NCBI GenBank assembly: GCA_965649825.1
Contig: OZ287695.1
Location: 62,001-126,000, forward strand
Direction of reading: 5' to 3'
DNA from: Penicillus capitatus
Taxonomy: Eukaryota > Plantae > Chlorophyta
DNA: 64,000 nt
The position numbers were made by a program, and so were the translations under genes. A model generated the notes under the pieces. That model did not search any database. It was not told the DNA's origin and saw only the letters and a program-made list of their open reading frames with translations. How positions within the stretch are numbered: the stretch's first letter is position 1; each line of letters opens with the position of its first letter. This document shows positions 1-64,000 of this stretch, piece after piece.

Positions 1-2443
1 GGCTCTCGTGGTCCGAGCTGATGATTTGGTTTGGAAGTCTCCTATACCTTTTTCCGATTTCGGCTCTCCGCCCTGTTTTACGGACTGCCCTTTCGATGCG
101 GCACAAGCGGAAATAAGGTCTTTACTTTCTCGTGGAATTATTCAAGAAGTGCCTCGTTTTGACAGAGGTTATTTTTCTCCTGTGGTTTTTCTACGCAAAC
201 CGGATGGTCGAGTACGAGTCGTGGTGAATTTTCAAAAGCTCAACAAATATTCTGAAGTGTGGAACTCTTATACGCCGGACACCCGAAATGCGGTCAGAGC
301 GGTGGACCCTTCCTGGCGTATGTTTACTGTCTTGGATCTCCGTGACGGGTATTTTCATATACCCGTTGACGCTTCTCTGAGTCGTCTGTTTTGTTTCTCT
401 TGTTTTGGTCGCCGTTACCGCTTTGTGACACTCCCTCAAGGTTGGGCATCGAGCGTCGGTTTTTTCAATGATAGGGTACGCCGCATTTTAGGCCACCTTC
501 CGGCCACGGCTTATTTTGATGATATCATTGTTGGTGGTCACGATCGTAAGTCGCACGATCGTAACTTGGAGGCAGTTTTGGCGGCACTTCAGTCGGCAGG
601 AATGCATGTGAACCCCAAAAAGGTACAATTCTGCAGACCCACGGTCAGTTTTTTGGGGTTTTCGCTTTCCGGGGATGCATTTCATCAACGTAACTACATC
701 TCTAAACAACTAAGTCAGTTGCCCCTGGTTCGTTCAAAGAAGGATTTGCAACGCATTCTTGGAATTTTTACTGCTTGTCGAGGTACTTGTCCTGGTTTGG
801 GTCTGGCAATAGCGCCCCTTTACTCGTTTTTACAAAATTCGGTCCGGAAGATTGATTGGCCTTCAGTGCAAAACCAAGTTCGGGCTGTTGCCGCTCACTT
901 ACTGAGGAACTCGTTATCTTTTCTGCGTTGTGTGGCGTCACCTGTTTTTCACATTGAAGTCGATTGGTCGGGAGCTGGGGCTGGATATCTCCTTTATGCC
1001 GGCCATAGATCGGAACGTCGTATTATTGCAACCAATTCTCGTGCTATACGTGGTTTCCCAGTTAGCTCTTTTTTAGGGGAATTAGATGCGATCGTCTGGT
1101 GTTTGCAAGATACGCTCCCACTTACTGTTGGCTGTCCGGTTCATGTTTATACGGACTCTTTGAGTGCCCTACAAAGGCTACGAGCTCACGATGTTTGGTA
1201 CAAATCGCGCACTGACCTCAGAATTGGCAGACGCCTTGGTTGGTTGTGGGAGAATTTTCCGCTTGATACTCGTTTGTTTTTACATTTCTTACCCTCTTCG
1301 GACAACTTTCTAGCCGATTGTCTATCACGATGGCCGACGTTAGCGCAACGGAAGGAAGTTGACCTGAATGCAATAAGGGGAGGAGATCAATACAATGAAC
1401 GTTTAAGGAGAATTTCAAAAGCACACGAAGGTCATTGGGGAACGAGGAAAACGATCTTGAACCTGAAGAGGGATGGTGGACCTTGTTGGAAAGGCATGGA
1501 GAGTGAAGTTCGTAATTTTGTCGAGAATTGTCGGAAATGTCAAATGTGGGGGCCTCCTCAACATAGAACAAGTTTGGGGGCGACACCAGTATCCAAAGTC
1601 GGGGAGGCTGTCGGAATAGATTTCGCCGGACCCCTACCAAGAGGGGATTTGGAAGGACCGAGATTCATCGTGCTCATGGTAGATTACCTTTCTCGGTGGA
1701 TCGAGGCATGGTCCTGTGAGAGCCCTAGCAGTGAAGCGGCCATAAGGGCGTTGAATAAATGGAAACAAAGAAACGGTAGAATCGAAATGCTTGTTTCTGA
1801 CAACGCACAGACATGGAATTCCAAGAGCGTAAAAAAATGGTGTGAGGAGAATGGAGTGAAGCAACGGCTGACGGCAAGCTACATGCCAAAATCAAATGGT
1901 ATGTGTGAGAGACAGATCGGAGTACTGAAGGGAAGATTAAAAAGAATGTGTGAGACGCCTGAGGACTGGTCGAAGATTCTATCGAGAGCTGTCAGAGTCA
2001 TAAATAATTCAGTGAACGAGACAACATTACACAGCGCCGCAGAGCTTAAGATGGGGTTGTCAAGAGACGGAAAGAGAGTTTCTCGAAGTGTACAAGAACA
2101 ATGGATTTCCGAAGCACAAGAAAGGACAAAGAAACAACAGTGGCAGTCGAACGAGACACGAAGGAGAAAATATGGAAACCGTAAAATCATCAGGATGGGT
2201 GATCATGTGTTAAGGCCAAGATCTAGATCAGATACAGCTACATTAACCCCACCATGGGATGAAGAGCCATGTGTAGTGGTAGATGCCATTGGCAATCACA
2301 TGTGGCTGGTAGAGGGACTCCTATTTGGAACCGTTTCAAGAGTGCATGACGATCAACTAAGACACATCCCGCGTCAGACCACAGCGCAGCTGGAAGCGTG
2401 TCGAGATGGGATGATGAAGGCAAGTAATGAAGATCATTACTGA
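1..2443 (+). mobile_element. Ty3/Gypsy LTR-retrotransposon pol (RT - RNase H - integrase); 5' part (gag/PR) lies upstream of the window; no 3' LTR found
   Basis: Uninterrupted 811-aa ORF, open from the window start. RT motifs LDLRDGYFHI, LPQG and YFDD. RNase H D/E/D/D (VDWSG, GELDAI, YTDS, LADCLSR). Integrase HHCC (HEGHW...CRKC) and DDE (GIDF, SDNA, NGMCER), plus a C-terminal GPY/F-like module. RT-RH-IN order indicates the Ty3/Gypsy clade. Confidence 0.95.
1375..1386 (+). other. 12-nt polypurine tract AAGGGGAGGAGA at the RNase H/integrase boundary (candidate central PPT)
   Basis: The sequence is seen directly and sits where strand composition flips. Function is only inferred; it also encodes IRGGD. 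Confidence 0.3.
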
Positions 2444-3731: not shown

Positions 3732-6283
3732 TTACATGTTTATATCGCTCACGGCAGTATTGAAGATCCCAGACGCACTTTGACTGCAAATGTTATTCGC
3801 AACTAAAAATGCAACGCTCAAGTACCCAGTCAACACCGAATTTTTATCGACGTTGTCGTATTTCGAATCATTACCTTCAAATCTGCTCACGCACACACAA
3901 GCGTGTAGCATTAAGGGCTCCGTCGGCTGAACGGTTCTTTTACCTTTTGACTGTTGCTTCTTCTTCTTCGTTGTATCCGATATGCAGACTTGACAGCTTG
4001 CTACTGGTGTTCTTCTTGTAGGCTCCGTACGTGACCACTGGTATTCCTGGAAGAACGGGGATGTCGCAAAAGGTGCAATGAGTGAACTCGACCTGTCTTT
4101 TTGAGTTGATCAATACGGTCGAGGAAACTGCTGTCGCCGAATGACTCTACTGTGGAGATCCCAATTCCATCTGCGGACCTCAGCTGTCCCAGCAAAACGG
4201 ATCCTTGTCGGACAGCATCCGAAACGTCCGGATGGTGGTAGAAACGAAGATGGACCTGCAAACACTCTTCAGCATCGCTTCCGCGTCTCGCGCATGGCGC
4301 ACGTTCATGTCTCTGGCTGCATTCCTCAAGCCCTTCTTGAGGCCACTGATCGCCTCCCTCGGATGCTTCCCGAACAGAAAGAACTTGAACGTCTGTCCGT
4401 GGACGCGTCTACCGTCGCGCCGAGAGCAGGGATCCGACAGAAGCCTCGTGGCTTCCTCCGGAGATTTCACGACTCTGGATGCTGTTTAAGCATACTGCTG
4501 GTTGGGTAACGGCATTCGCTGTCAAGTCCTACCTGTCAAAGAAGCACTTTGAAGTGCTTTCGGTGGCATTGTGTACCCCAGAGATTCCAACGTCATCAGG
4601 GTCGTCCCTAGGTAGCCTTTCAGATGCTCTTGTGGATCGATCGTGAACTGAACTTCCTTCTTCTTCATTGCCTGTCAACGGAGATGAGAACAGTCGTCGA
4701 AGGACAACACTCCACGGACCTGAAGGATCCTTCGATCTATCCCATGCGTGCCGTAGTAGATGCAATGCGCCAGCGGATCTGGCTTTCCGCGGGGACAGAG
4801 CCGGTTGAGCGACTTCAAAATCTGGTGCACGAGGCTGAACGCACGAGCGTCGGCCATGAAAAGACCATTTATTTCTTTGTCGTCTAGGATGATGGGTATG
4901 AGTTTGGACTTCAGTTCACTTTGCATCTGGAACACAGCAACGGTCAGGAGAACCAGACGCGGGTGCGGTTTGACCGTCGTCTTCAAGTTCAAGTCGTAGG
5001 TGTCGTTGCCGAACGCGTCCTGAAACCCTCTGCAGCGATGCATGCTGTCCAGGTTGTCGTGGTAACTCAAGCACAAGGCGGTCTGCAGGCGAAAGAACAG
5101 TCAGTGCGTTGGGTGATCATCTCTGCAGAGAACCGACTGCGGCAATCACCTTCATTCCTGCTTCTTGCATCACGTTCCCAGCCAGTCTACCAACATTCGT
5201 CTCTTCGTCGCCAACATGGGCCAGCGTTTTCAGATCGATCGTCCTATAGGCCTCGAGTGAGCCCAACATCATCACCGGGTTTTCTTCGTGCGCCTTCTTC
5301 ACGGCATCCACATAACTGGGATCGTCAAAGCCTGATATCATCAGACCGTCATACAGCGCGTCTTGAGCTTCGAAAATGTTGTCGATAGCCTGTGAGATGT
5401 CATCTGTCCTGTCGATACTCACGTTCACTCTGTCACACCAGGACACTTCATGTTGCACGACGCGGCCAATACTGGATGGCGACCTTAGAAAAGATGCAGC
5501 GTCCCGCACACCTCTGTCGAACTCCCAATCAAATGTTCTAGAGACATCTTCGAAGACCAAAACTTTAAAGAACTTTTCACGGAAGGGATAAAAAACTGGG
5601 GGTGTTGAATACAGATGGGCAGAGGTCAGGTGAAAGGAGGGCGGCAAAAACTGCGATAACACGGAAAGCATGAGCCCCACATCCAAGACCAACAAGACCA
5701 GACAACTGGCGAGCAAACACATCCAACTACACCCTATCCTCCCCACAGACTTCTACACAAGGCAATCGACATCGGCCGACAGAGAAAACGGCGCAACTGT
5801 TTGGGAGATGGTCGAGTCCACGGAGTCTCGGCCTCGAGCAGCAACTGGGTGTTCTGGTCGTGGATCTGTGTCCACAAATGGGGTCTCCGCGGCGATGGGT
5901 TGACTCTTCTCCAGCCAGGATCGAACGAAACCCGTCCCGCTCGAAACCGAAGGCATCAGGTCTTGATTCTCAGCCGGTACGTCCACGCCAAACCATTTCT
6001 GAGTCATGCTCCTTGTTATGGATTCTGCCATGTCCTGGTCCAGCGACAGGTCCGAAGGGCTTACGTCGGCGCTCCGAAAGGTGAGGGATGCGAGACGGCC
6101 GCGCCGTCGTCGAGCGTGCACAGCGAACGGATGGTGTACTCCCTCCACCGACGACATCGCACGGTCAGTCGTTCTGAGGCTCGTGCCCGAACGCTCGACA
6201 CTTTCTGAAGAGACGAGTTCTTTCTGCTCTTCCGCGGTCGGCTTCTGCTGACGGCGTCGCAAAAAGTTCTTTGCCCGAATCAT
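3732..6283 (-). CDS. Multi-exon single-pass membrane protein with type-1 periplasmic (sugar) binding protein domains: one complete, one internally shortened
   Basis: Spliced ORFs 5753-6283, 5117-5746, 4675-5076, ~4520-4680, 4180-4470, 4001-4261 and further exons down to the TAA at 3732. TM segment CLLASCLVLLVLDVGLMLSVL. PBP1 motifs DGLMISGFDDPSYVDAVKKA, HVGDEETNVGRLAG, KTALCLSYHDNLDSMHRCRGFQDAF (joined across GT-AG intron 5083-5149) and FTIDPQEHLKGYL. Second unit: ADGIGIS, GIPVVTYG, LHIGYNE, LTGYLSVAFL. Confidence 0.7.
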
Positions 6284-6964: not shown

Positions 6965-7717
6965 ATGTATGCGTTTCTCGCCGTCTTGCTTCTCTGTCCG
7001 TGCGCCTCAGCCAATTTTCATGCAGGCGACTTCGTACAGATGTCTCGAAGGGGACAGTTTCGGCAGCAGAGAACAACGTGGCACGATTTGCAAGGACGTC
7101 ACTGTCCGCGTTTCAACGTCGACACCAGAGTCGCCATTCCGATTCACAAACCCAAAGATTACGACGAACTGGACGAATACAAGATGCAGCTCTCCTTGGA
7201 TCACGGGCGTCTCTTCTCTGCCTGGGTGACCATTCTCGCCAAACCCGATGCGCCCGGAGCTGGAATTGACCTCTTTCACGCACATCGGCTGACCGACGAC
7301 GTGCTGATCCCTTACGTTCACGTCCAACTGTGGAAGAGAGAAGACACGCTGCTGAAGATGAGAGTCGACAGCCGTCGGCTGCCGGAAGCATACATGAAAG
7401 AGCATCCAGAGATCGTGGCAGAGTACAGGAACAGAGATCACTGGCCGAAACACGTCTTAGTCACGTACCATCTGCAAATCCACAGGCTCCCTCCGGATGC
7501 ATTTGCTCACAGATACGAGTGGAGATCGCTGGACGAAGTGGATGCGGAGCGGGGACTGTTGGTCCTCATCTACGGCGGCGTTGCCATCATCATGGTGATG
7601 ATGGTGGGCGTGGCGCTGACAGCTCGCGATAAAATCGCCGAGTTCTTCTCGGAATTGACAACAGAGGGTCTGCAAACAACGACCTCGGCGACAAAAGAAG
7701 AGGGCAAAGCCCAGTGA
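6965..7717 (+). CDS. NPU: NPU-like (No Primexine and plasma membrane Undulation) membrane protein
   Basis: Signal peptide, then GDFVQMSRRGQF..RTTWHDLQGRHCPRF..VAIPIHKP, HWPKHVLVTY, W...EVD..GLLVL and a C-terminal TM. Matches my recollection of the Arabidopsis NPU family. A 48-nt in-frame intron is likely after VLVT. Confidence 0.85.
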   Translation: MYAFLAVLLLCPCASANFHAGDFVQMSRRGQFRQQRTTWHDLQGRHCPRFNVDTRVAIPIHKPKDYDELDEYKMQLSLDHGRLFSAWVTILAKPDAPGAGIDLFHAHRLTDDVLIPYVHVQLWKREDTLLKMRVDSRRLPEAYMKEHPEIVAEYRNRDHWPKHVLVTYHLQIHRLPPDAFAHRYEWRSLDEVDAERGLLVLIYGGVAIIMVMMVGVALTARDKIAEFFSELTTEGLQTTTSATKEEGKAQ

Positions 7718-7724
7718 CGACGGA

Positions 7725-9258
7725 TCATGTTCTGCTTAAGAGCGAGGAGATCATTTCGTCCTTCGTCTTCCTGTATCTCTGACAGTAGACCTCTTCGAGA
7801 GGGACCCTGGGATCCCCATACTTTGCAGAGTTTGTAATCTGAGGCAATTTCTGCAGCAGCGTCCTAAAGCAGGATGCGTACAGGAGCAGACGTTCCAGTA
7901 CCGCCAGACCTGCGTGCAGAGAGAGACATTGCTCGTGCGCGGATCCAGTCGCTTTGTTCACCGGGTACACTCTTCTCGCGTTTGTCTGCGCTGAGGTGGA
8001 TGTACCTCTCGAGCTCCTTCCGCCAGTACCATTCCATCGCCTCATTCAGCAGGGTTTCCATATCTTGAAACACCTGCAGACGCATGAAATGAGATTCGCA
8101 GCATCGCTCTGAGGAATACACCTTCGCAGCCGGTCTGCTGTAGATCGAGGGATGGACACCGGCAGTCCTCTACACACAGCACGCCAGTCTGCAAGAACGT
8201 CCAGAGCATCCATCGGGCTAAGCACTCGCGACTTTGGGTGTGAGAAGGAAGGTTGAACGTGAACGCGCTTGGGAGTCGCAGTCCCTCTGTCGTTCAGCTC
8301 GACGTACACGACGAACGAATCATGCCTCATGCAAACCTAACACGAAGGCAAGGGATCCATCTCACAGCACAGTCGTGGTGAACACGGCACGAATTGGGCG
8401 AGAGACACCGAGATGGTATCTGTGCAGAACGCTGTCTGAAAAGAACACTTCACGGCAGCGATCTCGGCTATCCGGTTTGTAATGCTGCGGATGTCATTGT
8501 TGTGCATCTCATCTAAACCACAGGCAGGGTGCTCTGAAGGGCAACCGAACGTTCATGCTCACCGGCCGCAAGATTTTGAAACAGTTTGGCCTTTGCCTCT
8601 CTGACGCGTTCGTTTCTGAGCGACCTCAGGTCCGCGTCCAATTTTCGAGTGCATCGGCCGAACTGGGAGCTCTCGGGGGATGCAGGCAACTTGTCTTCCT
8701 CGTTCTCGGAGTCTCCCAGTCTCGGAGCAAAATCCAGTGCGTCAGCTGGGTCCATCTGGAGGGCACACGATGTGGTCCCAGAAGGAGTGCCGGTTGTCTT
8801 GCCCTGTCGTCTTCAGATCCGCCAGACACTTGCATCAATGCCGCCTCGATCTGAAAGATTCGTTCGAGCGGCTTCTCGAGTTCTGCCAGGATTTCTTCCG
8901 CTCTCTAGTGGGAATGCAATGGAATGCACGAGCATCGATCGAGCTGCGGAAGAACACCTTGGTGATGCTCTTGGCGGCATCGGATGTTGGAGGACTGGAA
9001 GCCACCGTCTCCGACAGATGCTTTGCAGAATTCCGAAAGTCGATGAGCTGCAGTCGAACATCCCGTCAGCCGTCTCATCTCGACGACAGGCACCTTCTCG
9101 GATGTCTTTCGAATCAGCGACAGCCCTTCGTCGACGGGAACGGATGGCACGGGGCCTGAGGACAGCCATGTCGATCACAGGCTGCGCAGGGCATACGGAA
9201 AACTCTTGGTTCTCTGCGCGGGCCGTCTGTCCGCCGTGCGATCGCGTGTACGCTTCAT
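7725..9258 (-). CDS. Orphan multi-exon protein, copy A (partly coiled-coil)
   Basis: Exons MKRTRDR..., RAEEILAELEKPLERIFQIEAALMQ, MDPADALDF..., ETLLNEAMEWYWRKELERYIHL and ...EMISSLLSRT* are flanked by GT-AG. A 2-nt indel between copies falls in a predicted intron. Confidence 0.55.
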
Positions 9259-9351
9259 GCTGAGTCAAGATGTGACCTCTTGGGAATGGGGAAGAGGTGA
9301 CGAAACACGTAACTGCGTGCGTGTCGTCGAATCGCATCGTCTGCCATTAGA

Positions 9352-10801
9352 ATGGACAGCGCCGATCCCGAGCTGCAAAAGGTAAGGAGAATCGAAAAGC
9401 CGTGTGCTTCAGAGATGTCGCAGGCAATCTACGAAAGCCTCCGACAAACATCAGAACCGTACGCATTATCACGCGGAAGCAGCTCGCACGTCGACCTCCG
9501 ACGCGTAAGGCTTGCAGCAAGGCGAGAAGGTTTTGAACTGAGGGCGGGTGTCACCTGCAGAGCACCTCGGACGTGACTTTCGGACGGGTGGATTCCCTCC
9601 GACGCTCGGGAATCTCACCGGCGGCATCAAGGTGTGCCCACACTCCGCTGACGAACATCAGGTCGCCTTGCACCCCGCACGCACATTGCTGCAAACGCCA
9701 AGTGCGTCAGGCTTCGTCGAAGTCGAAGCTTGAGCAGACGAAATTCGAAGAGGAGCGATCCGAGCGAAGATGATCGGACAGCGCCAGAAGACGCCGAGAT
9801 GAAAGACGTCGTCGAGCGGAGCATTCTTCTGCCCTCTGCTGCAGAGCGCATCACGTTTGACAGCGTTGCTGGGTTGGACGGCGCCAAGAGGCTGCTGACC
9901 GAAGCGATCGCCCTCCCCTTGTTGATGCCAGACTTCTTCACTGGGATACGCGAACCCTGGAAAGGCGTCCTGCTCTTCGGACCGGCGGGAACAGGAAAGA
10001 CGCTTCTGGCGAAGGCGCTGGCCAGCACAGACTCGATTCGTTTCTTCAACTGTCCCAGTTCCGCACTGACGTCCAAGTACAGAGGCGACAGCGAGAAACT
10101 GGTTCGGGCCGTTTTCTCGGCGGCGCGGAAGGCGGCTCCATCCATCGTCTTCTTCGACGAGGCAGACGCCTTGATCTCCAAACGGGGAACGGTCGACGAG
10201 CACGAAGCAAGTCGAAGATTCAAATCGGAAGTGTTACAGCAAGTGCGTTGGTTGCCTCGTCTCGCGAGGAACGCGTTGCCAGAGAGATAGAGCACGGTGT
10301 AGATGGACGGGGTGACGAGCGGGGCTGCGCATGTCGTGGTTCTGGCGACCAGCAACTGCCCCTGGGACATCGACGAAGCAGTTCTCCGTCGTTTCGAGAA
10401 GCGCATCCACATTCCGCTGCCGGATGCCGCTGCCAGGGCGTCCGCTCTTCGCCTCTACCTTCAAGTCGATGCACTGGCAGTCGAAGAGCACCCGCCAAGC
10501 GTTCTTTGTCTCGCAGGACGTGCGGTGCTCGGAGGACGTGAACATCGAAGCCATCGCTGAGCGTTTGGACGGTTACAGCGGTGCCGATCTTTGTCTGGTT
10601 TGCAAGGATGCTTCGATGATGTTCGTGCGCAAGTGGATGGAAGGCAAGTCCCCAGAAGAGATGATAAAGTTCAGAGAGAGCGGAGCATCGAACGCAATCG
10701 TGACCATGGAGGATTTTTGCAAAGCGATAGAGAAATCGAATCCCTCTGTCAGAAACGCGGAGAGATACGAGAAATGGGCGACTGAATTCGGCTCTATCTA
10801 G
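9352..10801 (+). CDS. Katanin p60-like microtubule-severing AAA ATPase, copy A (short N-terminus, no MIT domain seen)
   Basis: EPWKGVLLFGPAGTGKT (Walker A), SKYRGDSEKL (pore loop), FFDEAD (Walker B), ATSNCPWDIDEAVLRRFEKRI, GYSGAD, C-terminal YEKWATEFGS. About 5 short introns. Confidence 0.9.
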
Positions 10802-10913
10802 AGAAGGAGGGGAAGGATGTCTGTTTTCTTTACCGAGAACACTGTGTACGTCACTCCCAACAAATGTTTGTTCCATGCACCGTGGACATGAATAAATGAT
10901 AGAAGCGGTTGCA

Positions 10914-11294
10914 TCAAGTCAATGCAGCCCCTTCCACTTGCTCCAGACCAAATTTTTGAGCTGCTTTGTCCACTGTCTTCTGAATCTCTCTCTTTGACAG
11001 AATCGATCCCACTTTGTTCTCGAGAGGAGAGATCTCTTTGGGTATCAGATCTTCGACCAGATTCGCAATGACTGTCATCAGCCACTCCGAAATTCGATCA
11101 ATGATCTTCATCGACACCCCATCAGCCGCTTTCTCTCGAACATCATTCGCCAAGGCGTCAACGAAGAGGTCAAAGAGAGATCGAATGCCCTGCCGTAGAG
11201 TATTGCGTATGTGTGTTGTCCATAGCGGTCGCAAGACAGAGCAGAGGTATCGCACACGATCCACAATCAGCTGTGCACTGTCCAGCAAAGCTTG
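10914..11294 (-). pseudogene. Duplicated 3' fragment (~125 codons) of EXO84, truncated at the duplication breakpoint
   Basis: Near-identical to 60324-60704 of the intact EXO84 gene. Homology stops at 11294 and there are no upstream exons. Confidence 0.85.
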
Positions 11295-11560
11295 ACTCGA
11301 CGGACACTCGCTCGAGCTCTATGACAGATCCGATCCGACGTGCAATGCCTGTCGGGAAGACATGTTAAGGCCACAGCCCGAGTCATGGCCTCGATATCTG
11401 TCCAAGAGACATTACACTCCATTCGACTGCGTGAGAGACAGAAAAAAAAACCAATGGCGTTGCAAAATGGACGCAATCATTCATCATTGAAGTTTGTCTT
11501 GACGGAACGGCGTCAAGAATTTGAGAGAGCGACCAAGGCGGCGCGAAATCGAGAGATCAA

Positions 11561-40726: not shown

Positions 40727-43222
40727 CTAGAAAACTTCTTTGCGGAAGATAAACCTCGGTCCGTTCTTTGAAGCGCTGCGCTTGCGACATTCTTGCTTGA
40801 GAACATTCTTCAATCCCGATGGACCACAATAAAACACACCAACTCTACTCTGTTCCACATGTTCTGCTTGGACGACACGGAAAATCCTGGTCCAATCAGG
40901 ACGCCCAAAATGAACCACAGACTTTCTGACGACGCTGCCCTGTTCCATATCAACATTCTCAAACTCTGCCAATCTCAACAGCATGACTCTGAGATCGTTG
41001 CCTTCCTTGAGAGATGTGATATGAATATTGATATCCAGCAATTCGTCTTCGTCTTTGTCGGCGATCTCATCGACTAGTGTCTTGAACCAGGAAGCCTCTT
41101 TTCTTGAACGGACGGTCCAATGAAAGTACACTTTCTCCAGTCTCTTCTTTCTGTCGGATGGTGGGGTATGAAGTACGGATTTCAGGATCGATGCAAACGG
41201 AGTGACGCCGATTCCAGCGCCAATGCACATGACGACGCCGTAGTCGCCATAGTTCTGTGCAGGAGCACCGTATGGACCGGCCACGCGGATGTTGAATGGG
41301 TAGGCTACATCGCTGCGTGTTGCGAGATTGGATCGGCTTCGACTGAAGGCCTTGTAACCAGCCACAGCTGTGTACAATGTGTTTGTCCAGTCTCCAGCTG
41401 CTCGAATGTGTACGCTAAGGAATGGCTCATGTGGAGCTGATGTCAGGGTGAATGGATGCCATTCAAACGGAGCAATCTGAAAACAGTTGATAAATATGTA
41501 CTGACCCGAACGGTATTTTAAGCCTTCTGGCTTATTGACCTTCACTTCCACGACCTTACCCGGCAGCGTTCTCAGTCCGACAACAGGTGTCATCGAAGAC
41601 GGCTGTCTGCCTCGGACAAAGCGTTCTGCAGCATAGAAGAAAACTGGAACCATGACCCAGAGCCATGAATCACTCCATGCCCATTCATTTCTTTCATCGG
41701 GAATGTGAGGGAAGGGATGAAAAAGCATGGCAAGGTAAAACAGCGCAAAGAGCTGATGTGTGTACCAGAAGTAGTTGAAATTGTTCAGGAGACGGCCAAT
41801 GCGAATGGCGATTCTCCGATGTGTGGACATGCTGTTTTCCTTTTCTCCAGGCGCTTTGTTGAAAAAGGCGAGCGATTTGGGATAGTCCAAAGCAAAGAGA
41901 GCAGCAATGGAGTACACGACGATGAGAATGATCCCGGTCACACCATACCAGGAACCGACGAGCGCCCAGAGGCCAGGCTGATCGGATCGATCTCTCAGCA
42001 GTTCCAGCGGAAGGCCTCTGTAATCAGGTGTCGAGCTGTTGACGGCGGACAAATCGAAGTCGAGATCCTTCTTGTTTTCAGGAAAGGCAAAGGACCACTG
42101 TTTGAAGAGACTGGTGTCCTTCCATCGAATCACATCGACCACATGCAACAGGGTGTGTGCCCAGGCCAGTGCAAATCCGATTTTGCCAAGCATGCGGTGA
42201 TAGGCAATGGAGTTGTCGAAGTCAAAAACATGCTTCAGTGCTGTTTTCCTCAGCCTTGTGACAAGCGTTCTGGAAACAGGGATTAGAATCAATGTGAATG
42301 TCGCCTTCATTCCTTGTCCACATCCCTTAGCCACGGGCAGCGTCCAGCTCAACAGATTACGCTTGCGGGCATCTCGACAGCGGACAGGGTCATGCTTCGT
42401 CATTTGCAGACTGAAGGTCATGTACTTTGCTGCCGTCTCACTCATATGAGCATCGTAGACATCGTTAACGCGATCCATCACTTCTCGTCGAGTGACGTTT
42501 GCGAAGGGATCGCGGTAATCCAAGTCCACACCAGAACAGTCTCCTGCATATCGCCAAAATCTCCAGAAGAAGCATGAGGCGATGACAAGGACAGTGAGAA
42601 TATTGGTAAATGCACGCCTTGGGTTGTCTTCGACCCAACTCCACTGCTTCTCGAACCATATCTTTCTGTTCTGGATGATCCGTGTTGTCGCATTGGAGAG
42701 TAAGGCTGCTCGAGCACCATCTCCAATCGTGAAGTTGCCAAGGATATCTGGGTACGATCTCAAGACACTGACAAATCTATCACGTGTAATGCGTTCACGG
42801 CCTTCATTCGTGAAGAGGTTTATCAGAACCCCGATGAGATCTTCAACATCCGTCGTCGACATAACATTGTCGCTCTCTTCAACACTGGCCTCCAGTGCTT
42901 CTTTGAGCTCCTCTCGAGAAATGAAACCGTCTTTGTCCGTATCGAAGAGAGTGAAGGCGAACGTGCCGAGCTGCTCGTAGTTCCCGGAAGCGAGCAAATG
43001 CATAAAGCGGCTATACTCTTCGAAAGAGATGTTGCCCTTCTGACTAACATCCAGAGTGTCAAATAGCTTGACGGCGTAAAAACGGCTGCGACATTGAGTA
43101 CTCTCCATGAACTGCAGCAGATTCATAATACCGCGCCCCTTGGTCGCTTTCCTGAACTCCATTTTCCATTTGTCTAAGCTTTCTTGCGGGATAGGCACTT
43201 TAACCGCAAGAATATCCTCCAT
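40727..43222 (-). CDS. RBOH: Respiratory burst oxidase homologue (EF-hand NADPH oxidase), intronless
   Basis: Single 831-aa ORF. EF hands (DVSQKGNISFEE, DTDKDGFISREE), heme His pairs (YHRMLG...AHTLLH; WYTHQLF...LFHP), FAD motif EWHPFTLTS, NADPH motifs GAGIGVTPF and GVFYCG, terminal FRKEVF. Confidence 0.97.
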   Translation of the reverse strand: MEDILAVKVPIPQESLDKWKMEFRKATKGRGIMNLLQFMESTQCRSRFYAVKLFDTLDVSQKGNISFEEYSRFMHLLASGNYEQLGTFAFTLFDTDKDGFISREELKEALEASVEESDNVMSTTDVEDLIGVLINLFTNEGRERITRDRFVSVLRSYPDILGNFTIGDGARAALLSNATTRIIQNRKIWFEKQWSWVEDNPRRAFTNILTVLVIASCFFWRFWRYAGDCSGVDLDYRDPFANVTRREVMDRVNDVYDAHMSETAAKYMTFSLQMTKHDPVRCRDARKRNLLSWTLPVAKGCGQGMKATFTLILIPVSRTLVTRLRKTALKHVFDFDNSIAYHRMLGKIGFALAWAHTLLHVVDVIRWKDTSLFKQWSFAFPENKKDLDFDLSAVNSSTPDYRGLPLELLRDRSDQPGLWALVGSWYGVTGIILIVVYSIAALFALDYPKSLAFFNKAPGEKENSMSTHRRIAIRIGRLLNNFNYFWYTHQLFALFYLAMLFHPFPHIPDERNEWAWSDSWLWVMVPVFFYAAERFVRGRQPSSMTPVVGLRTLPGKVVEVKVNKPEGLKYRSGQYIFINCFQIAPFEWHPFTLTSAPHEPFLSVHIRAAGDWTNTLYTAVAGYKAFSRSRSNLATRSDVAYPFNIRVAGPYGAPAQNYGDYGVVMCIGAGIGVTPFASILKSVLHTPPSDRKKRLEKVYFHWTVRSRKEASWFKTLVDEIADKDEDELLDINIHITSLKEGNDLRVMLLRLAEFENVDMEQGSVVRKSVVHFGRPDWTRIFRVVQAEHVEQSRVGVFYCGPSGLKNVLKQECRKRSASKNGPRFIFRKEVF

Positions 43223-46365: not shown

Positions 46366-48567
46366 TTAGTCGACCTCTTCAATCTTTGGTCCTGATCCAG
46401 CTGAAGCATCCGCACCAGCGGCGGCACCTCCCATATCGGGCATACCACCTGGCATACCACCTGCGCCTGGTGGCATACCACCTTCCGCTTGATACATCTT
46501 GGCGATGATGGGATTGCAGATGCCTTCGAGTTCTTTCATCTTGGCATCGTACTCCTCTTTCTCCGCCATCTCGTTGTTCTCCAACCACGAGATGGTATCC
46601 TCAATGGCCTTCTCTATCTTGGCCTTCTCATCGGCTGCGATCTTCTCGGAGACTTTCTCTTCATTCACCGTGTTTCGCATGTTGTAGGCATAGTTTTCGA
46701 GTCCATTCTTGCTCTCTATCTTCTCTTTGTGCGCCTCGTCCTCCGCTTTGTATTTTTCTGCTTCTTGAACCATGCGTTCGATGTCTTCTTTCGATAACCG
46801 TCCCTTATCATTGGTAATGGTGATCTTATTCTTGCGTCCTGTCGTCTTGTCTTCTGCCGAGACATTCAGAATTCCATTTGCGTCAATGTCAAAGGTGACA
46901 CTGATTTGTGGGACACCACGGGGTGCTGGTGGAATGCCGGTTAGTTCAAATTTACCAAGGAGATTGTTATCTCTTGTACGAGAACGTTCTCCTTCGTAAA
47001 CTTGAATTAACACGCCTGGCTGATTATCAGAATATGTCGAAAAGACTTGTTCTTTCTTGGTAGGGACTGTTGTATTTCTGGGAATCAGCGTCGTCTAAGG
47101 GGCCGGAATGCGGCAACAGTGGAAGGAGGGGCAGAGGCTTACCATGACACCACCTGCTGTTTCCAGACCGAGTGAGAGAGGGGCGACATCTAACAGCAAG
47201 AGATCTTGCACTTTTTCACTTTGACTGCCACCTAAAATCGCTGCCTGGACAGCAGCACCATAGGCTACTGCTTCGTCTGGATTGATGGAACGACAGAGTT
47301 CTTTTCCGTTGAAGAAATCTTGCAGCATCTGTTGGATTTTGGGAATTCGTGTCGATCCTCCCACCAACACGACATCGTGGATCTGTGACTTGTCCATCTT
47401 CGCATCTCTGAGGCATTTGCCAACGGGATCCATGCACTTTCTGAAGAGATCCATATTCAACTCCTCAAAACGGGCACGGGTGATGGCACTGGCAAAATCG
47501 ATGCCTTCGAAGAGAGAATCCAGCTCAATAGTCGTCTGCGTCGTCGCCGAAACCGTTCTCTTAGCTCTTTCGCATGCTGTCCTCAGGCGACGACAGGCTC
47601 TGGCATTGTTTGTCAAGTCCTTCTTGTATTTTCTCTGGAATTCTTTGGCAAAGTGCGTTACCATGCGCTCATCGAAATCCTCGCCGCCCAGATGGGTATC
47701 CCCAGCCGTGGCCTTCACTTCGAAGATACCTTCTTCAATCGTTAGCAGAGACACATCGAATGTCCCTCCTCCCAGATCAAAGATCAGCACATTCCGTTCG
47801 CCAACAGTCGTGTCTTTTTTGTCCAGTCCATACGCAATGGCGGCAGCTGTAGGTTCGTTGATGATTCGCAGAACCTCGAGACCGGCAATGGTGCCAGCAT
47901 CTTTTGTTGCCTGTCGCTGGGAGTCATTGAAATAGGCAGGAACAGTAATGACAGCGCGCTTCACTTCCTGGTCTGCACCAAGAAAAGACTGCGCCGTCTC
48001 CTTCATCTTGGTCAAGACCATGGCAGAGATCTCCTCTGCCTTGAAGACCTTCTCCTCACCCTTGTAGTTCACTGCAAGGACAGATAGAGCATCTCAATGG
48101 CAGGCGAATGAGGCAACAACGCACCATGGATCTCCGGAACGTCGCCTGGACCAGACTTGACCGCAAAAGGCCACAGTTTCACGTCGCTTTGGACGATGGG
48201 GTCTGCGAATTTTCGACCGATGAGTCGCTTTGCGTCAAAGACGGAGTTCATCGGGTTCATGGCCACCTAGCGCACAACGAAGACGTGTTGTCCGACGATA
48301 AAACAAGGCGGGGGATGCTCACTTGGTTTTTAGCGGCGTCACCAATGAGACGCTCGGCGTCGGTAAAGGCGACATACGACGGCGTGGTTCGGTTTCCTTG
48401 ATCATTAGCGATGATTTCTACACGGTCGTTCTGCCAGACACCAACGCAGCTGCATAGACACAGGCATCCTTCAATTCGGCCGCATTCTGAGGCGCAGAGA
48501 GCGCAGGGGATACGGACCTGTACGTCGTTCCAAGGTCAATACCGACCGGCGGCGCATCTCTTGCCAT
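46366..48567 (-). CDS. HSP70: Cytosolic HSP70
   Basis: [47 protein letters not shown]-terminal GPKIEEVD; 4 introns traced. Confidence 0.98.
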
Positions 48568-58869: not shown

Positions 58870-60704
58870 ATGACATGCCATGATTGTGTTGCTGAGGAAT
58901 TTATGGATGATCATTTAGAATCTGGCAGAATGTTGGGTTGTCGAGAAGACAAGATGGCATTCTTCGAGCAGGAGGACTTTGATTTGGATCAGTTTGCAGA
59001 ACTGCATATGGTCAATCTTACGGAGAAGGGGATCGGAACACTCAAAGGGGATCTAGCAGCTTTGCAGAACAAGTGCGAAGACGATGTCGGTATCAGAAAT
59101 GTGCTTGATTGCTAGTCTGGAGTATCGTGTGTCTGTGATAGGCTCAAAGCGCTATACATGGCAACTATGCTGTGTTTGTGGATGCCTGCAATGGAGTGGC
59201 GGAGGTGGATGCTCAGTTTCAGCATCTTCGTGTGTTGGTGACAGGCACAACATCTCTCACCAATGAACTCAAAAGAGCCATACAAACGCCTGTGATGCGT
59301 CCACTAGCAGACCTGTCCGATGGACTCTTTGCTGCTTCGAGAGAACTCTCCAACACAGCGCATTTGAGAATTGCAAAGGCTTTGGAAGAGCTGGACGTTG
59401 CCATTGCAGAAAGAGATTTTCCCGTTGCGAAGAAACTACTATTGGAGTCCGACAAGGAAATGCAGAATGTCCGTCTGTTTGTCTAGATGAGTGATGTCTT
59501 AATAGTCAAGGGTGTCATACTTCTTTTAGGCAACAGGAATGGAGGATTTGCTCTCTCTGGAGTGTTCCGTGGATGAAAGGCGTCAAACCATCGTGCAGTT
59601 GCTCGAAAACCAACTTCAGGATCCCACATTGGGAACCAGCGATCAGCACGTGCTGCTCCAGATCTTGGCCTCTGTCGCTGGAGATGTTCACGCTCTGTCC
59701 TTTCTTCTGTCGTGGCACTCGGCGCAAATTCACAATGATCTGCAGCAACTTCCAAAACCACACAGAACAGGTGAGCCATCTTTCAACAAGAGGTGCTGTG
59801 TTTTCATGGATACTGCAGGGGAGAGCGAAAATGAAGGTGCCGACTATTCAGGGAGTCTGTCGCAGTGCAGTTTCCACGGCATTGGCCTGGCTGTTGAGAA
59901 TTTTCGTTCTGTCTATGGATCCACTGCTGCAGCACCCCTGTGTTCCATTTTGACACAGTGGGCAGAATGCGAGGCAAAGAAATGTGCAGAAGCTATTCAG
60001 AACAATGCCCTTTCGGCATTCGCTGGACTCTCTTCGGTAGTCAGTAGTGTTGCCATGTCGCTTGTCTACGCGCATGCTCTCAAGAACACGCATTCCATCA
60101 ACCTCGTCACCGTTCTACGAAAGGTCTTTTGGCCAACCATCGAAGGTTATGATCCACTCGATGTCGCCAATCTCGTGTCTGTCTGATTTCTGCATGACTG
60201 ACAGGCTTCGTTGCGAAGTATTTCGAATCCACAGGAGAGGAGATATCCATCATGGTGCACGACGAGATGGTTGTCTTGCTGACAACTTCATCTCCTTGGG
60301 ATCGGCACGCATCTCCTTCCAGCCAAGCTTTACTGGACAGTGCACAGCTGATTGTGGATCGTGTGCGATACCTCTGCTCTGTCTTGCGACCGCTATGGAC
60401 AACACACATACGCAACTCTCTACGGCAGGGCATTCGATCTCTCTTTGACCTCTTCGTTGACGCCTTGGCGAATGATGTTCGAGAGAAAGCGGCTGATGGG
60501 GTGTCGATGAAGATCATTGATCGAATTTCGGAGTGGCTGATGACAGTCATTGCGAATCTGGTCGAAGATCTGATACCCAAAGAGATCTCTCCTCTCGAGA
60601 ACAAAGTGGGATCGATTCTGTCAAAGAGAGAGATTCAGAAGACAGTGGACAAAGCAGCTCAAAAATTTGGTCTGGAGCAAGTGGAAGGGGCTGCATTGAC
60701 TTGA
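58870..60704 (+). CDS. EXO84: Exocyst subunit EXO84
   Basis: NLTEKGIGTL...AIHGNYAVFVDAC (Vps51/Exo84 N-terminal motif), followed by helical Exo84_C-type exons with GT-AG introns. Confidence 0.85.
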
Positions 60705-60817
60705 TGCAACCGCATCTATCATTTGTTTCATGTCCACGGTGCATGGAACAAACATTTGTTGGGAGTGACGTACACAGTGTTCTCGGAAAAGAAAACAGAC
60801 ATCCTTCCCCTCCTTCT

Positions 60818-62267
60818 CTAGATAGAGCCGAATTCAGTCGCCCATTTCTCGTATCTCTCCGCGTTTCTGACAGAGGGATTCGATTTCTCTATCGCTTTGC
60901 AAAAATCCTCCATGGTCACGATTGCGTTCGATGATCCGCTCTCTCTGAACTTTATCATCTCTTCTGGGGACTTGCCTTCCATCCACTTGCGCACGAACAT
61001 CATCGAAGCATCCTTGCAAACCAGACGAAGATCGGCACCGCTGTAACCGTCCAAACGCTCAGCGATGGCTTCGATGTTCACGTCCTCCGAGCACCGCACG
61101 TCCTGCGAGACAAAGAACGCTTGGCGGGTGCTCTTCGATTGCCAGTGCATCGACTTGAAGGTAGAGGCGAAGAGCGGACACCCTGGCAGTAGCATCCGGC
61201 AGCGGAATGTGGATGCGCTTCTCGAAACGACGGAGAACTGCTTCGTCGATGTCCCAGGGGCAGTTGCTGGTCGCCAGAACCACGACATGCGCAGCCCCGC
61301 TCGTCACCCCGTCCATCTACACCGTGCTCTATCTCTCTGGCAACGCGTTCCTCGCGAGACGAGGCAACCAACGCACTTGCTGTAACACTTCCGATTTGAA
61401 TCTTCGACTTGCTTCGTGCTCGTCGACCGTTCCCCGTTTGGAGATCAAGGCGTCTGCCTCGTCGAAGAAGACGATGGATGGAGCCGCCTTCCGCGCCGCC
61501 GAGAAAACGGCCCGAACCAGTTTCTCGCTGTCGCCTCTGTACTTGGACGTCAGTGCGGAACTGGGACAGTTGAAGAAACGAATCGAGTCTGTGCTGGCCA
61601 GCGCCTTCGCCAGAAGCGTCTTTCCTGTTCCCGCCGGTCCGAAGAGCAGGACGCCTTTCCAGGGTTCGCGTAACCCAGTGAAGAAGTCTGGCATCAACAA
61701 GGGGAGGGTGATCGCTTCGGTCAGCAGCCTCTTGGCGCCGTCCAACCCAGCAACGCTGTCGAACGTGATGCGCTCTGCAGCAGAGGGCAGAAGAATGCTC
61801 CGCTCGACGGCGTCATTCATCGGGGCGTCTTCTGGCGCTGTCCGATCATCTTCGCTCGGATCGCTCCTCTTCGAGTTTCGTCTGCTCAAGCTTCGACTTC
61901 GACGAAGCCTGACGCACTTGGCGTTTGCAGCAATGTGCGTGCGGGGTGCAAGGCGACCTGATGTTCGTCAGCGGAGTGTGGGCACACCTGGATGCCGCCG
62001 GTGAGATTCCCGAGCGTCGGAGGGAATCCACCCGTCCGAAAGTCACGTCCGAGGTGCTCTGCAGGTGACACCCACCCTCAGTTCAAAACCTTCTCGCCTT
62101 GCTGCAAGCCTTACGCGTCGGAGGTCGACGTGCGAGCTGCTTCCGCGTGATAATGCGTACGGTTCTGATGTTTGTCGGAGGCTTTCGTAGATTGCCTGCG
62201 ACATCTCTGAAGCATACGGCTTCGCGATTCTCCTCACCTTTTGCAGCTCGGGATCGGCGCTGTCCAT
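60818..62267 (-). CDS. Katanin p60-like AAA ATPase, copy B
   Basis: Same motifs and introns as copy A; 9 amino-acid differences in the AAA region. Confidence 0.9.
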
Positions 62268-62360
62268 TCTAATGGCAGACGATGCGATTCGACGACACGC
62301 ACGCAGTTACGTGTTTCGTCACCTCTTCCCCATTCCCAAGAGGTCACATCTTGACTCAGC

Positions 62361-63892
62361 ATGAAGCGTACACGCGATCGCACGGCGGACAGACGGCCCG
62401 CGCAGAGAACCAAGAGTTTTCCGTATGCCCTGCGCAGCCTGTGATCGACATGGCTGTCCTCAGGCCCCGTGCCATCCGTTCCCGTCGACGAAGGGCTGTC
62501 GCTGATTCGAAAGACATCCGAGAAGGTGCCTGTCGTCGAGATGAGACGGCTGACGGGATGTTCGACTGCAGCTCATCGACTTTCGGAATTCTGCAAAGCA
62601 TCTGTCGGAGACGGTGGCTTCCAGTCCTCCCACATCCGATGCCGCCAAGAGCATCACCAAGGTGTTCTTCCGCAGCTCGATCGATGCTCGTGCATTCCAT
62701 TGCATTCCCACTAGAGAGCGGAAGAAATCCTGGCAGAACTCGAGAAGCCGCTCGAACGAATCTTTCAGATCGAGGCGGCATTGATGCAAGTGTCTGGCGG
62801 ATCTGAAGACGACAGGGCAAGACAGCCGGCACTCCTTCTGGGACCACATCGTGTGCCCTCCAGATGGACCCAGCTGACGCACTAGATTTTGCTCCGAGAC
62901 TGGGAGACTCCGAGAACGAGGAAGACAAGTTGCCTGCATCCCCCGAGAGCTCCCAGTTCGGCCGATGCACTCGAAAATTGGACGCGGACCTGAGGTCGCT
63001 CAGAAACGAACGCGTCAGAGAGGCAAAGGCCAAACTGTTTCAAAATCTTGCGGCCGGTGAGCATGAACGTTCGGTTGCCCTTCAGAGCACTCCGCCTGTG
63101 GTTCAGATGAGATGCACAACAATGACATCCGCAGCATTACAAACCGGATAGCCGAGATCGCTGCCGTGAAGTGTTCTTTTCAGACGGCGTTCTGCACAGA
63201 TACCATCTCGGTGTCTCTCGCTCAATTCGTGCCGTGTTCACCACGACTGTGCTGTGAGATGGATCCCTTTCCTTCGTGTTAGGTTTGCATGAGGCATGAT
63301 TCGTTCGTCGTGTACGTCGAGCTGAACGACAGAGGGACTGCGACTCCCAAGCGCGTTCACGTTCAACCTTCCTTCTCACACCCAAAGTCGCGAGTGCTTA
63401 GCCCGATGGATGCTCTGGACGTTCTTGCAGACTGGCGTGCTGTGTGTAGAGGACTGCCGGTGTCCATCCCTCGATCTACCACAGACCGGCTGCGAAGGTG
63501 TATTCCTCAGAGCGATGCTGCGAATCTCATTTCATGCGTCTGCAGGTGTTTCAAGATATGGAAACCCTGCTGAACGAGGCGATGGAATGGTACTGGCGGA
63601 AGGAGCTCGAGAGGTACATCCACCTCAGCGCAGACAAACGCGAGAAGAGTGTACCCGGTGAACAAAGCGACTGGATCCGCGCACGAGCAATGTCTCTCTG
63701 CACACAGGTCTGGCGGTACTTGAACGTCTGCTCCTGTACGCATCCTGCTTCAGGACGCTGCTGCAGAAATTGCCTCAGATTACAAACTCTGCAAAGTATG
63801 GGGATCCCAGGGTCCCTCTCGAAGAGGTCTACTGTCAGAGATACAGGAAGACGAAGGACGAAATGATCTCCTCGCTCTTGAGCAGAACATGA
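62361..63892 (+). CDS. Orphan multi-exon protein, copy B
   Basis: Inverted duplicate of 7725-9258 with reading frames preserved. Confidence 0.55.
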
Positions 63893-63899
63893 TCCGTCG

Positions 63900-64000
63900 T
63901 CACTGGGCTTTGCCCTCTTCTTTCGTCGCCGAGGTCGTTGTTTGCAGACCCTCTGTTTTCAATTCCGAGAAGAACTCGGCGATTTTATCGCGAGCTGTCA
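63900..64000 (-). CDS. NPU: 3' end of a second NPU-like gene copy (remainder beyond the window)
   Basis: Reverse complement of 7617-7717, including the stop codon. Confidence 0.85.
   Translation of the reverse strand, partial: TARDKIAEFFSELKTEGLQTTTSATKEEGKAQ

Follow-up and report, generated by a model that had tools for sequence, protein, structure and literature searches.

A Penicillus capitatus gene that may encode a receptor-like type II membrane protein with a remodelled flytrap domain

A 64,000-nucleotide stretch of the genome of the green alga Penicillus capitatus (hereafter the window) carries on its minus strand, at 6283-3732, one gene whose product joins a long N-terminal tail, a single transmembrane (TM) segment, one complete domain of the type-I periplasmic binding protein (PBP) fold and a truncated second one. 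We read this product as a lineage-specific, effector-less, receptor-like type II membrane protein of the Bryopsidales with a remodelled flytrap, and put the probability of this reading at about 0.42. Glutamate receptors, class-C G-protein-coupled receptors (GPCRs) and natriuretic-peptide receptors all bind their ligands through Venus-flytrap (PBP) domains, and the history leading from bacterial binding protein to eukaryotic receptor is usually reconstructed from these few animal families. The present gene and its relatives provide an independent series for a PBP of the sugar/cyclitol type in marine algae and eukaryote-like marine sequences, comprising a bacterial tandem lipoprotein, membrane-anchored tandem PBPs, fusions with seven-transmembrane (7TM) and kinase domains, and an effector-less derivative in the Bryopsidales.

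Gene structure and domain architecture

The gene starts with an ATG at 6283-6281 and ends with a TAA stop at 3734-3732, and the range that an earlier note on this DNA had given for it equals the coding span exactly. The exon chain (Table 1) was built via tblastn with three homologues and then by DNA alignment to a closely related genomic orthologue on L009, a 369-kb metagenome contig from ENA. The final model has ten exons encoding 681 amino acids and nine GT-AG introns of 46-84 nt. Two of these, in frame and hidden in the longest open reading frames (ORFs), were exposed by tblastn as insertions of 18 and 16 codons relative to every homologue. In the DNA alignment the ten exons are 83-93% identical and free of indels save for an in-frame indel of 3 nt in exon 10; the remaining gaps are confined to the nine introns, which are 58-80% identical (one reaches 92%). 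Exon 1 shows 86% amino acid identity to L009 and exon 2 is 88% identical, both with zero indels. Every intron GT and AG is conserved, and the identical splice sites yield an intact ORF of 680 amino acids in L009. With nine spliceosomal introns and eukaryotic neighbours, this is a genuine eukaryotic gene and not contamination, as the earlier note had argued.

Ultra-short introns (46-84 nt) are the norm in the window. The Hsp70 gene has a GT-AG intron of 48 nt (47095-47142, minus strand), and tiny introns are therefore normal for this genome. Several of the introns are multiples of three without stop codons and are thus read through as ORF, so that the exon boundaries are disguised.

Table 1. 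Exons of the gene, with introns 1 and 2 (all on the minus strand; topology as predicted)
Feature	Position	Strand	Length and content
Exon 1	5790..6283	-	Cytosolic tail (residues 1-161) and first TM residues; lies in the 176-residue ORF
Intron 1	5706..5789	-	84 nt, GTTTTC...CGCCAG; contains the in-frame TAG 5755-5753
Exon 2	5484..5705	-	Remaining TM helix, linker, start of PBP domain 1
Intron 2	5483-5430	-	54 nt; removal guided by homologues
Exon 3	5150..5429	-	PBP domain 1, N-lobe; basis PF13407 match
Exon 4	4975..5082	-	Start of C-lobe; Cys336...Arg348-Cys349 motif
Exon 5	4720..4926	-	C-lobe; block MQSELKSKLIPIILDDKEINGLFMADARAFSLVHQILKSLNRLC at 4926-4795, Cys412-Cys423 loop at 4797-4762
Exon 6	4533..4671	-	Return to N-lobe, end of PBP domain 1; TIDPQEHLKGYL at 4644-4609
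Exon 7	4303..4481	-	Inter-domain linker and first strand/helix of truncated PBP domain 2 (FKFFLFG...LKKGLRNAARDMN)
Exon 8	4093..4255	-	N-lobe of truncated PBP domain 2; ADGIGIS at 4174-4154
Exon 9	3944..4046	-	Last N-lobe strand of domain 2 and hinge remnant LHIGY at 3987-3973
Exon 10	3732..3882	-	Closing helix of domain 2, LTGYLSVAFLV at 3833-3801, then TAA stop

The junction between tail and TM segment bears on the integrity of the gene. The tail ORF (176 residues, 13.8% Ser and 10.8% Arg) and the TM/PBP ORF, the two longest, share a frame in the window and are separated by the in-frame TAG. Such a stop could point to a decaying or mis-assembled gene, with the two ORFs giving separate products. 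The stop, however, falls within an intron that has kept its GT and AG in L009; tail and TM exons do not share a frame in that sequence, and splicing alone can join them there. The small indels between window and L009 at this junction also fall inside intron 5789...5706, the sole donor/acceptor pair that is both present and frame-compatible in the two sequences. Considered by itself, the window offers further in-frame junctions (a donor at 5780 or at 5756, an acceptor that closes the intron at 5727); the resulting introns of 30 nt, 54 nt (5780-5727) and 51 nt (5756-5706) were rejected because their splice sites are missing or frame-incompatible in L009. The ectodomain sequence is identical in a 691-residue working model (with the 54-nt intron) and in the final one.

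Relatives show the same order of tail, TM segment and PBP: one (P0002) encodes all three in a single uninterrupted genomic ORF, and the others are the Caulerpa lentillifera gene model g2287.t1 (P0003) and P0001, found on an intron-free contig of 2.3 kb (L001). This last contig, though intron-free and transcript-sized, was not accepted as a transcript, as its poly(A) tail is not clear. Once spliced, the ORF is free of interruptions in window and L009 alike, and the ratio of nonsynonymous to synonymous substitution (dN/dS) over the whole gene is 0.19 (Nei-Gojobori, window versus L009; a two-sequence and hence rough estimate). A broken gene is thus extremely improbable, and the union of tail, one TM segment and PBP in one protein, as proposed in the earlier note, stands.

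Residues ~207-482 make up a type-I PBP domain that is complete. Translated from the corrected splice model, it matches PF13407 (Peripla_BP_4) at 47.7 bits (gathering cut-off 35.1, E 1.9e-12); a draft in which introns 5483-5430 and 4974-4927 were still translated reached 27.6 bits, under the cut-off. A profile of the domain matched 4ru1 in the PDB at E 7e-11. The AlphaFold model of the ectodomain (predicted local distance difference test score, pLDDT, 76.8; predicted template-modelling score, pTM, 0.80) shows two predicted alpha/beta lobes joined by a hinge, the type-I PBP fold. Searched against the PDB with Foldseek, this model retrieved 4ru1 at E 2.5e-13, with target-normalised TM-scores of 0.76-0.81 for the CUT2 proteins 4ru1, 3g1w (0.80-0.81), AraP and CbpA; XylFII, a pure sensor PBP, is also among the structural matches. 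All four motifs quoted in the earlier note are present, namely DGLMIS (5350-5333), VGDEETNVGRLAG (5215-5177), ALCLSYHDNLDSMHRCRGFQDA and TIDPQEHLKGYL, and an ALCLSY...RCRGFQDA motif lies at 5079-5014 in exon 4. The assignment made there, to the binding proteins of bacterial sugar ATP-binding cassette (ABC) transporters, agrees with the profile and Foldseek matches to CUT2 proteins.

The C-terminal 170 residues, whose nature had escaped the earlier note, are a second PBP without its C-lobe (residues ~513-681). Aligned with domain 2 of tandem PBPs, they show a single clean deletion of ~140 residues; it comprises the whole C-lobe, which is missing in the window protein, P0001 and P0003 alike. This domain resembles the N-lobe of domain 1 (internal similarity E 4e-5) and matches PF13407 weakly at profile positions 16-101. 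The ectodomain is derived from a tandem PBP pair, of which domain 2 survives as one lobe packed against domain 1.

Residues 1-161, the tail, are modelled with a pLDDT below 40. The tail is intrinsically disordered yet carries five short motifs common to eight orthologues: M-x-R-A-x-x-L-L-R-R-R-[KQ] at the extreme N-terminus, SVERSAxSLRTT[DE]R, HPFxxxARRR, ADSITRSMTKKWFGV[DE]E and GTRYVRSWLE. They include basic clusters as well as R-x-x-S/T sites resembling those targeted by basophilic kinases. The earlier description of a disordered segment rich in Ser and Arg is correct as to composition and disorder; given its motifs and a dN/dS of 0.175, the tail is not mere filler.

The tail is followed by the single hydrophobic segment, VAPCLVLLVLDVGLMLSVL (Kyte-Doolittle 19-residue mean 2.5), and the TM segment spans 5797-5645 across intron 1. 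All orthologues have one such segment with ~160 residues before it. In signal-anchor insertion a long N-terminal segment favours the N-in orientation. Because a 160-residue segment precedes the single anchor and the Cys pairs of the ectodomain are conserved (two are invariant, one of them specific to the algal proteins), the protein is predicted to adopt type II (N-in) topology, with its PBP domains extracytosolic.

By region, dN/dS is 0.15 for the N-lobe and 0.09 for the C-lobe of domain 1, 0.27 for domain 2 and 0.48 for TM segment and linker. Together with the value for the tail, these ratios indicate purifying selection on every part of the gene, the half-domain included, and therefore a functional gene. 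They also bear on the explanation that this is a protein of the plastid envelope or thylakoid, with an N-terminal region that serves for organelle targeting: this region is rich in Ser and Arg and begins with a basic, amphipathic-looking helix, and the organism is photosynthetic, with phosphoribulokinase encoded in the window. Transit peptides, however, are poorly conserved and acid-poor. The tail is 13% acidic, its five motifs are conserved from the window to Caulerpa, its dN/dS is about as low as that of the N-lobe, and the paralogues described below have merely a short tail before a similar anchor. An organellar location is accordingly very doubtful.

Relatives and the binding cleft

The gene is not the orphan that it had been taken for. 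A word-indexed search found three full-length orthologues, and an exhaustive HMMER scan found 451 relatives, ten of them with E <= 1e-30. Several of the top relatives are exon-sized fragments of further orthologues, tail-only ORFs included, and contig look-ups suggest about ten distinct orthologous loci. By cluster look-ups, P0003 and P0007 belong to Caulerpa lentillifera and P0006 and P0008 to Ostreobium quekettii; P0174 is likewise from Ostreobium. The taxonomy of the homologues therefore places the family in the Bryopsidales, the siphonous green algae, and the window has matching green-algal genes, encoding phosphoribulokinase, PPR proteins, a KCBP-like kinesin, CDPK and a respiratory-burst-type oxidase.

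Outside the orthologues, the window protein is closest to proteins of Ostreobium and Caulerpa in which a TM anchor precedes two complete PBPs; identity is 24-30% (for domain 1, 30% in P0006, 26% in P0008 and 24% in P0007). These proteins (Ostreobium quekettii CAD7703166.1, CAD7695899.1 and P0174; Caulerpa lentillifera g4392.t1) bear only the automatic name 'Periplasmic binding protein domain-containing protein', and the TM-anchored two-PBP algal proteins are the highest-scoring full-length relatives outside the clade in the scan. They share with the window clade the order of N-terminal signal-anchor followed by Peripla_BP_4, as well as a Cys...Cys loop that is not in the bacterial homologues. 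In contrast to the conserved 160-residue tail and C-lobe-less domain 2 of the window clade, they have a tail of ~25-45 residues and two complete PBPs. Ostreobium has only intact paralogues among the hits; in Caulerpa lentillifera the intact P0007 stands beside the orthologue P0003.

Next in order are bacterial CUT2 binding proteins with 24-29% identity, tandem-PBP lipoproteins among them. Of the horizontal acquisition suggested in the earlier note, it can be said that any transfer from bacteria must be old, since the best bacterial identity is so low. The substrate-binding proteins of inositol/rhizopine type (e.g. 4ru1, the MocB-like model NF052284 and the Tetrasphaera tandem lipoprotein WP_462287879.1) share with the window protein the fold, the LC...RCxGF and DxQxxLQGY motifs and, in some members, the tandem arrangement. 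They differ in being lipoproteins or secreted, in lying beside ABC, SSF or two-component genes, and in having conserved cleft residues. NF052284 (rhizopine, or scyllo-inosamine, substrate-binding protein) is the best-named model, and the subfamily is therefore of cyclitol type; the window protein scores 88.9 bits and P0006 361.8 bits against an equivalog cut-off of 420, so that neither is an equivalog. In a neighbour-joining tree of 122 PBP units the eukaryote-like sequences group loosely and the window clade stands beside Caulerpa P0007; the tree has long branches and no support values, and hence was not used to date or direct any transfer.

As a ruler for the cleft we used the residues that we take to be the ligand contacts of E. 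coli RbsB (N13/F15/F16/D89/R141/D215/Q235; both the RbsB sequence and this list are presumed, and served for this purpose only). At the seven equivalent positions D-F-W-N-R-D-Q, a canonical cleft, is found in the bacterial relatives and in domain 1 of the tandem paralogues from Ostreobium; Caulerpa P0007 has lost several cleft residues, and the cleft of the window clade is remodelled. Only F223 and R348 (RbsB R141) are retained in the clade. Position 89 is G295, position 215 is G430 with an acidic residue two further on, and position 235 is P450; D394 is invariant and peculiar to the clade. The five replacements leave the "sugar sensor" of the earlier note unsupported, together with any canonical monosaccharide or cyclitol site. 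The clade would either bind some other ligand or use its C-lobe as a protein interface.

Several observations weigh against a ligand-sensing receptor. Five of the seven cleft positions (D13, W16, N89, D215 and Q235 of the relatives) are replaced, and domain 1 may therefore bind nothing. Position 13 (R/Q/G) and position 16 (D/H/G) vary even within the clade, and in L009 a His replaces the Asp of the IDPQ motif. Invariant columns make up 47% of the C-lobe and 23% of the N-lobe, a distribution that fits a protein-protein interface as well as a ligand site. On the cytosolic side, the tail has zero matches in Pfam and no known domain. Its profile gave a marginal match in the PDB (E 0.005, 20 bits), in which profile positions 73-113 (window about 6070-5945), the ADSITRSMTKKWFGV region, align with the N-terminal domain of the human TIR adaptor TRIF, probably by chance. 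As regards topology, the positive-inside rule is ambiguous around the TM segment when the flanking charges of the orthologues are inspected, and a conserved N-V-S sequon was rejected as a marker of lumenal location or glycosylation, for the bacterial homologues have the same strand motif as N-V-T.

The same cleft data bear on a different account, in which the protein is a ligand-independent pseudo-receptor or scaffold that acts through protein-protein contacts of its C-lobe, e.g. as an obligate partner or a modulator of the intact TM-anchored two-PBP paralogues. One flytrap subunit of heteromeric class-C receptors is likewise non-binding. Replacement of the cleft positions, two of them variable within the clade, would be expected here, and the strongest conservation is found in a helix-strand-helix block of the C-lobe, MQSELKS...NRLC (MQSELKSKLIPIILDDKEINGLFMADARAFSLVHQILKSLNRLC), with 73% invariant columns across four orthologues and the lowest regional dN/dS. 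Domain 2, being one lobe, is unable to close on a ligand, and intact paralogues coexist with the family in Caulerpa lentillifera. However, the cleft region is still lined by Arg348 and Phe223, and by Asp394 and Gln451, which are invariant in the clade; the hinge-proximal segments stay conserved, and the partner itself is hypothetical. We regard this account as possible but somewhat unlikely.

The receptor-like reading draws its main support from the repeated use of this module as a sensor ectodomain. Tandem Peripla_BP_4 domains are fused to the class-C GPCR domain 7tm_3 in P0038, P0054 and P0072, which are transcript-sized metagenome proteins, and P0124 combines a tandem PBP with a cyclase-like domain and Pkinase. 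The PBP module is also borne by P0176 (Pseudo-nitzschia multiseries) and P0047 (Astrolonche serrata). N-termini of the sugar-ABC PBP type were reported in 2013 on class-C GPCR-like proteins of diatoms (Port et al. 2013, PMC3727952), so that sugar-type PBPs on eukaryotic algal receptors had already been noted. These diatom proteins and the three metagenome fusions have the same PBP subfamily, often in tandem, on the outside of a eukaryotic membrane protein. They carry it N-terminal to a seven-helix domain, whereas in the window protein one TM segment precedes the PBPs and no effector is attached. With a single hydrophobic segment and no 7tm_3 match the latter is not a class-C GPCR, and with no kinase or cyclase domain found in its tail by Pfam it is not a flytrap receptor kinase or guanylyl cyclase.

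Signalling by flytraps without a fused effector has precedents. EhVFT of Entamoeba histolytica, an effector-less flytrap with a glycosylphosphatidylinositol (GPI) anchor, is reported to act upstream of cellular responses (PMC12965686). Like the window protein it is a flytrap of the PBP superfamily on a protist membrane without a fused signalling domain; it differs by its GPI anchor, the lack of a cytosolic part and an unrelated lineage, in contrast to a TM anchor and a long conserved tail. In bacteria, the PF13407 proteins XylFII, LuxP and ChvE signal via separate membrane receptors (XylFII-LytS, LuxP-LuxQ and ChvE-VirA; reviewed in PMC8050422). They are soluble or lipid-anchored in the periplasm and have a known kinase partner; the window protein is TM-anchored and any partner of it is putative. 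In the bacterial locus L004 (147-7280), the gene of the tandem-PBP lipoprotein P0014 is followed 9 nt later by one for a HAMP-PAS-GAF-HD-GYP protein and then by a hybrid histidine kinase; the locus looks like a candidate operon for binding-protein-dependent cyclic di-GMP signalling.

Other bacterial tandem PBPs point to transport. P0013 is encoded in a CUT2 ABC operon with sugar-acid catabolic genes (KduI, PfkB) and P0019 adjoins an SSF symporter gene, and the closest relatives by both structure and sequence are binding proteins of ABC transporters. The window protein could accordingly be a substrate-binding protein that is tethered to the membrane, much as binding proteins are in Gram-positive bacteria and archaea, and that delivers solute to an ABC importer or secondary carrier whose genes lie elsewhere in the genome. 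However, the canonical cleft residues are lost, a conserved 160-residue cytosolic tail under purifying selection would be needless, and the eukaryote-like relatives fuse the module to GPCR and kinase domains, not to transporters. Moreover, neither an ABC signature nor a BPD_transp_2-like ORF was found within the 64-kb window; the ATPase encoded at about 9.7-10.3 kb is of AAA, not ABC, type. The nearest kinase motif lies ~19 kb from the gene, and no kinase or cyclase is encoded within about that distance. That no permease, ABC ATPase, kinase or cyclase is attached or adjacent had been noticed before and is borne out here. A role in transport seems quite improbable.

A model for action and its significance

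As a receptor, the protein would detect a small molecule, extracellular or lumenal, that is not one of the canonical monosaccharide ligands. Either its binding or an association with a partner membrane protein that depends on the ligand would be relayed across the membrane and read out by proteins that dock on the tail or phosphorylate it, so that the protein would act as an effector-less receptor or co-receptor.

A bolder version of this model seems unlikely to us, namely that the clade is a class of single-pass eukaryotic receptors, so far unrecognised, with its origin in giant coenocytic green algae. A bacterial flytrap of cyclitol type would have been duplicated, half-deleted and re-tuned to a new extracellular cue, to be read out via a phosphorylatable tail without kinase, cyclase or 7TM domain. 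The cue might be a bacterial, wound-derived or cell-wall-derived metabolite, and regulated release of the tail, as known from type II membrane-tethered regulators, might possibly be involved.

PBP or flytrap ectodomains on eukaryotic receptors are already known, and so are effector-less membrane-anchored flytraps (EhVFT). What is new is that a long tail bearing motifs, a predicted type II anchor, a sugar/cyclitol-type PBP whose cleft has been rebuilt and a second PBP of one lobe occur together. This combination is conserved across the Bryopsidales, an order of giant single-celled algae, and its members have so far been named automatically only. As a non-binding partner subunit, the protein would offer a microbial counterpart to the way in which the subunits of heteromeric flytrap receptors divide their labour. 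As a sensor, it would open a way into how siphonous algae perceive environmental cues or bacterial metabolites; these algae depend on associated bacteria for their growth and morphogenesis (PMC12621095). In the literature searched on PF13407 and periplasmic binding proteins in Bryopsidales, algae and diatoms, we found neither a description of the family nor its experimental characterisation; a report on PBPb in chromalveolates (PMC2064935) was set aside, as it concerns a different PBP type.

Genomic neighbourhood

The gene neighbourhood gives no functional clue, and Rfam models matched nothing in the window. Downstream of the 3' end, at 8-2443 (plus strand), lies an ORF of 811 residues for a pol protein of Ty3/gypsy type (RVT_1, RNase H, Integrase_H2C2, rve), which runs off the window start and looks intact. 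Upstream, in divergent orientation and after a gap of ~680 bp, is an ORF of 250 residues (6965-7717, plus strand) with an N-terminal signal peptide and a C-terminal TM segment that matches no Pfam family. Its orthologue on L009 (3681-4437, minus strand) is 87% identical and has the same arrangement.

Further upstream, 7617-11304 and 60314-64000 form an inverted repeat of 3.7 kb with 98.6% identity, in which the AAA ATPase gene and other ORFs lie. The second copy extends beyond the end of the window; the repeat may reflect either a true inverted segmental duplication or an error of assembly. The orthologue of two more distant relatives (L002 1-1994 and L008 2636-5340) is located directly downstream of an Argonaute/Piwi gene. 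An EF-hand NADPH oxidase is encoded nearby on L008, and likewise in the window at 40727-43222.

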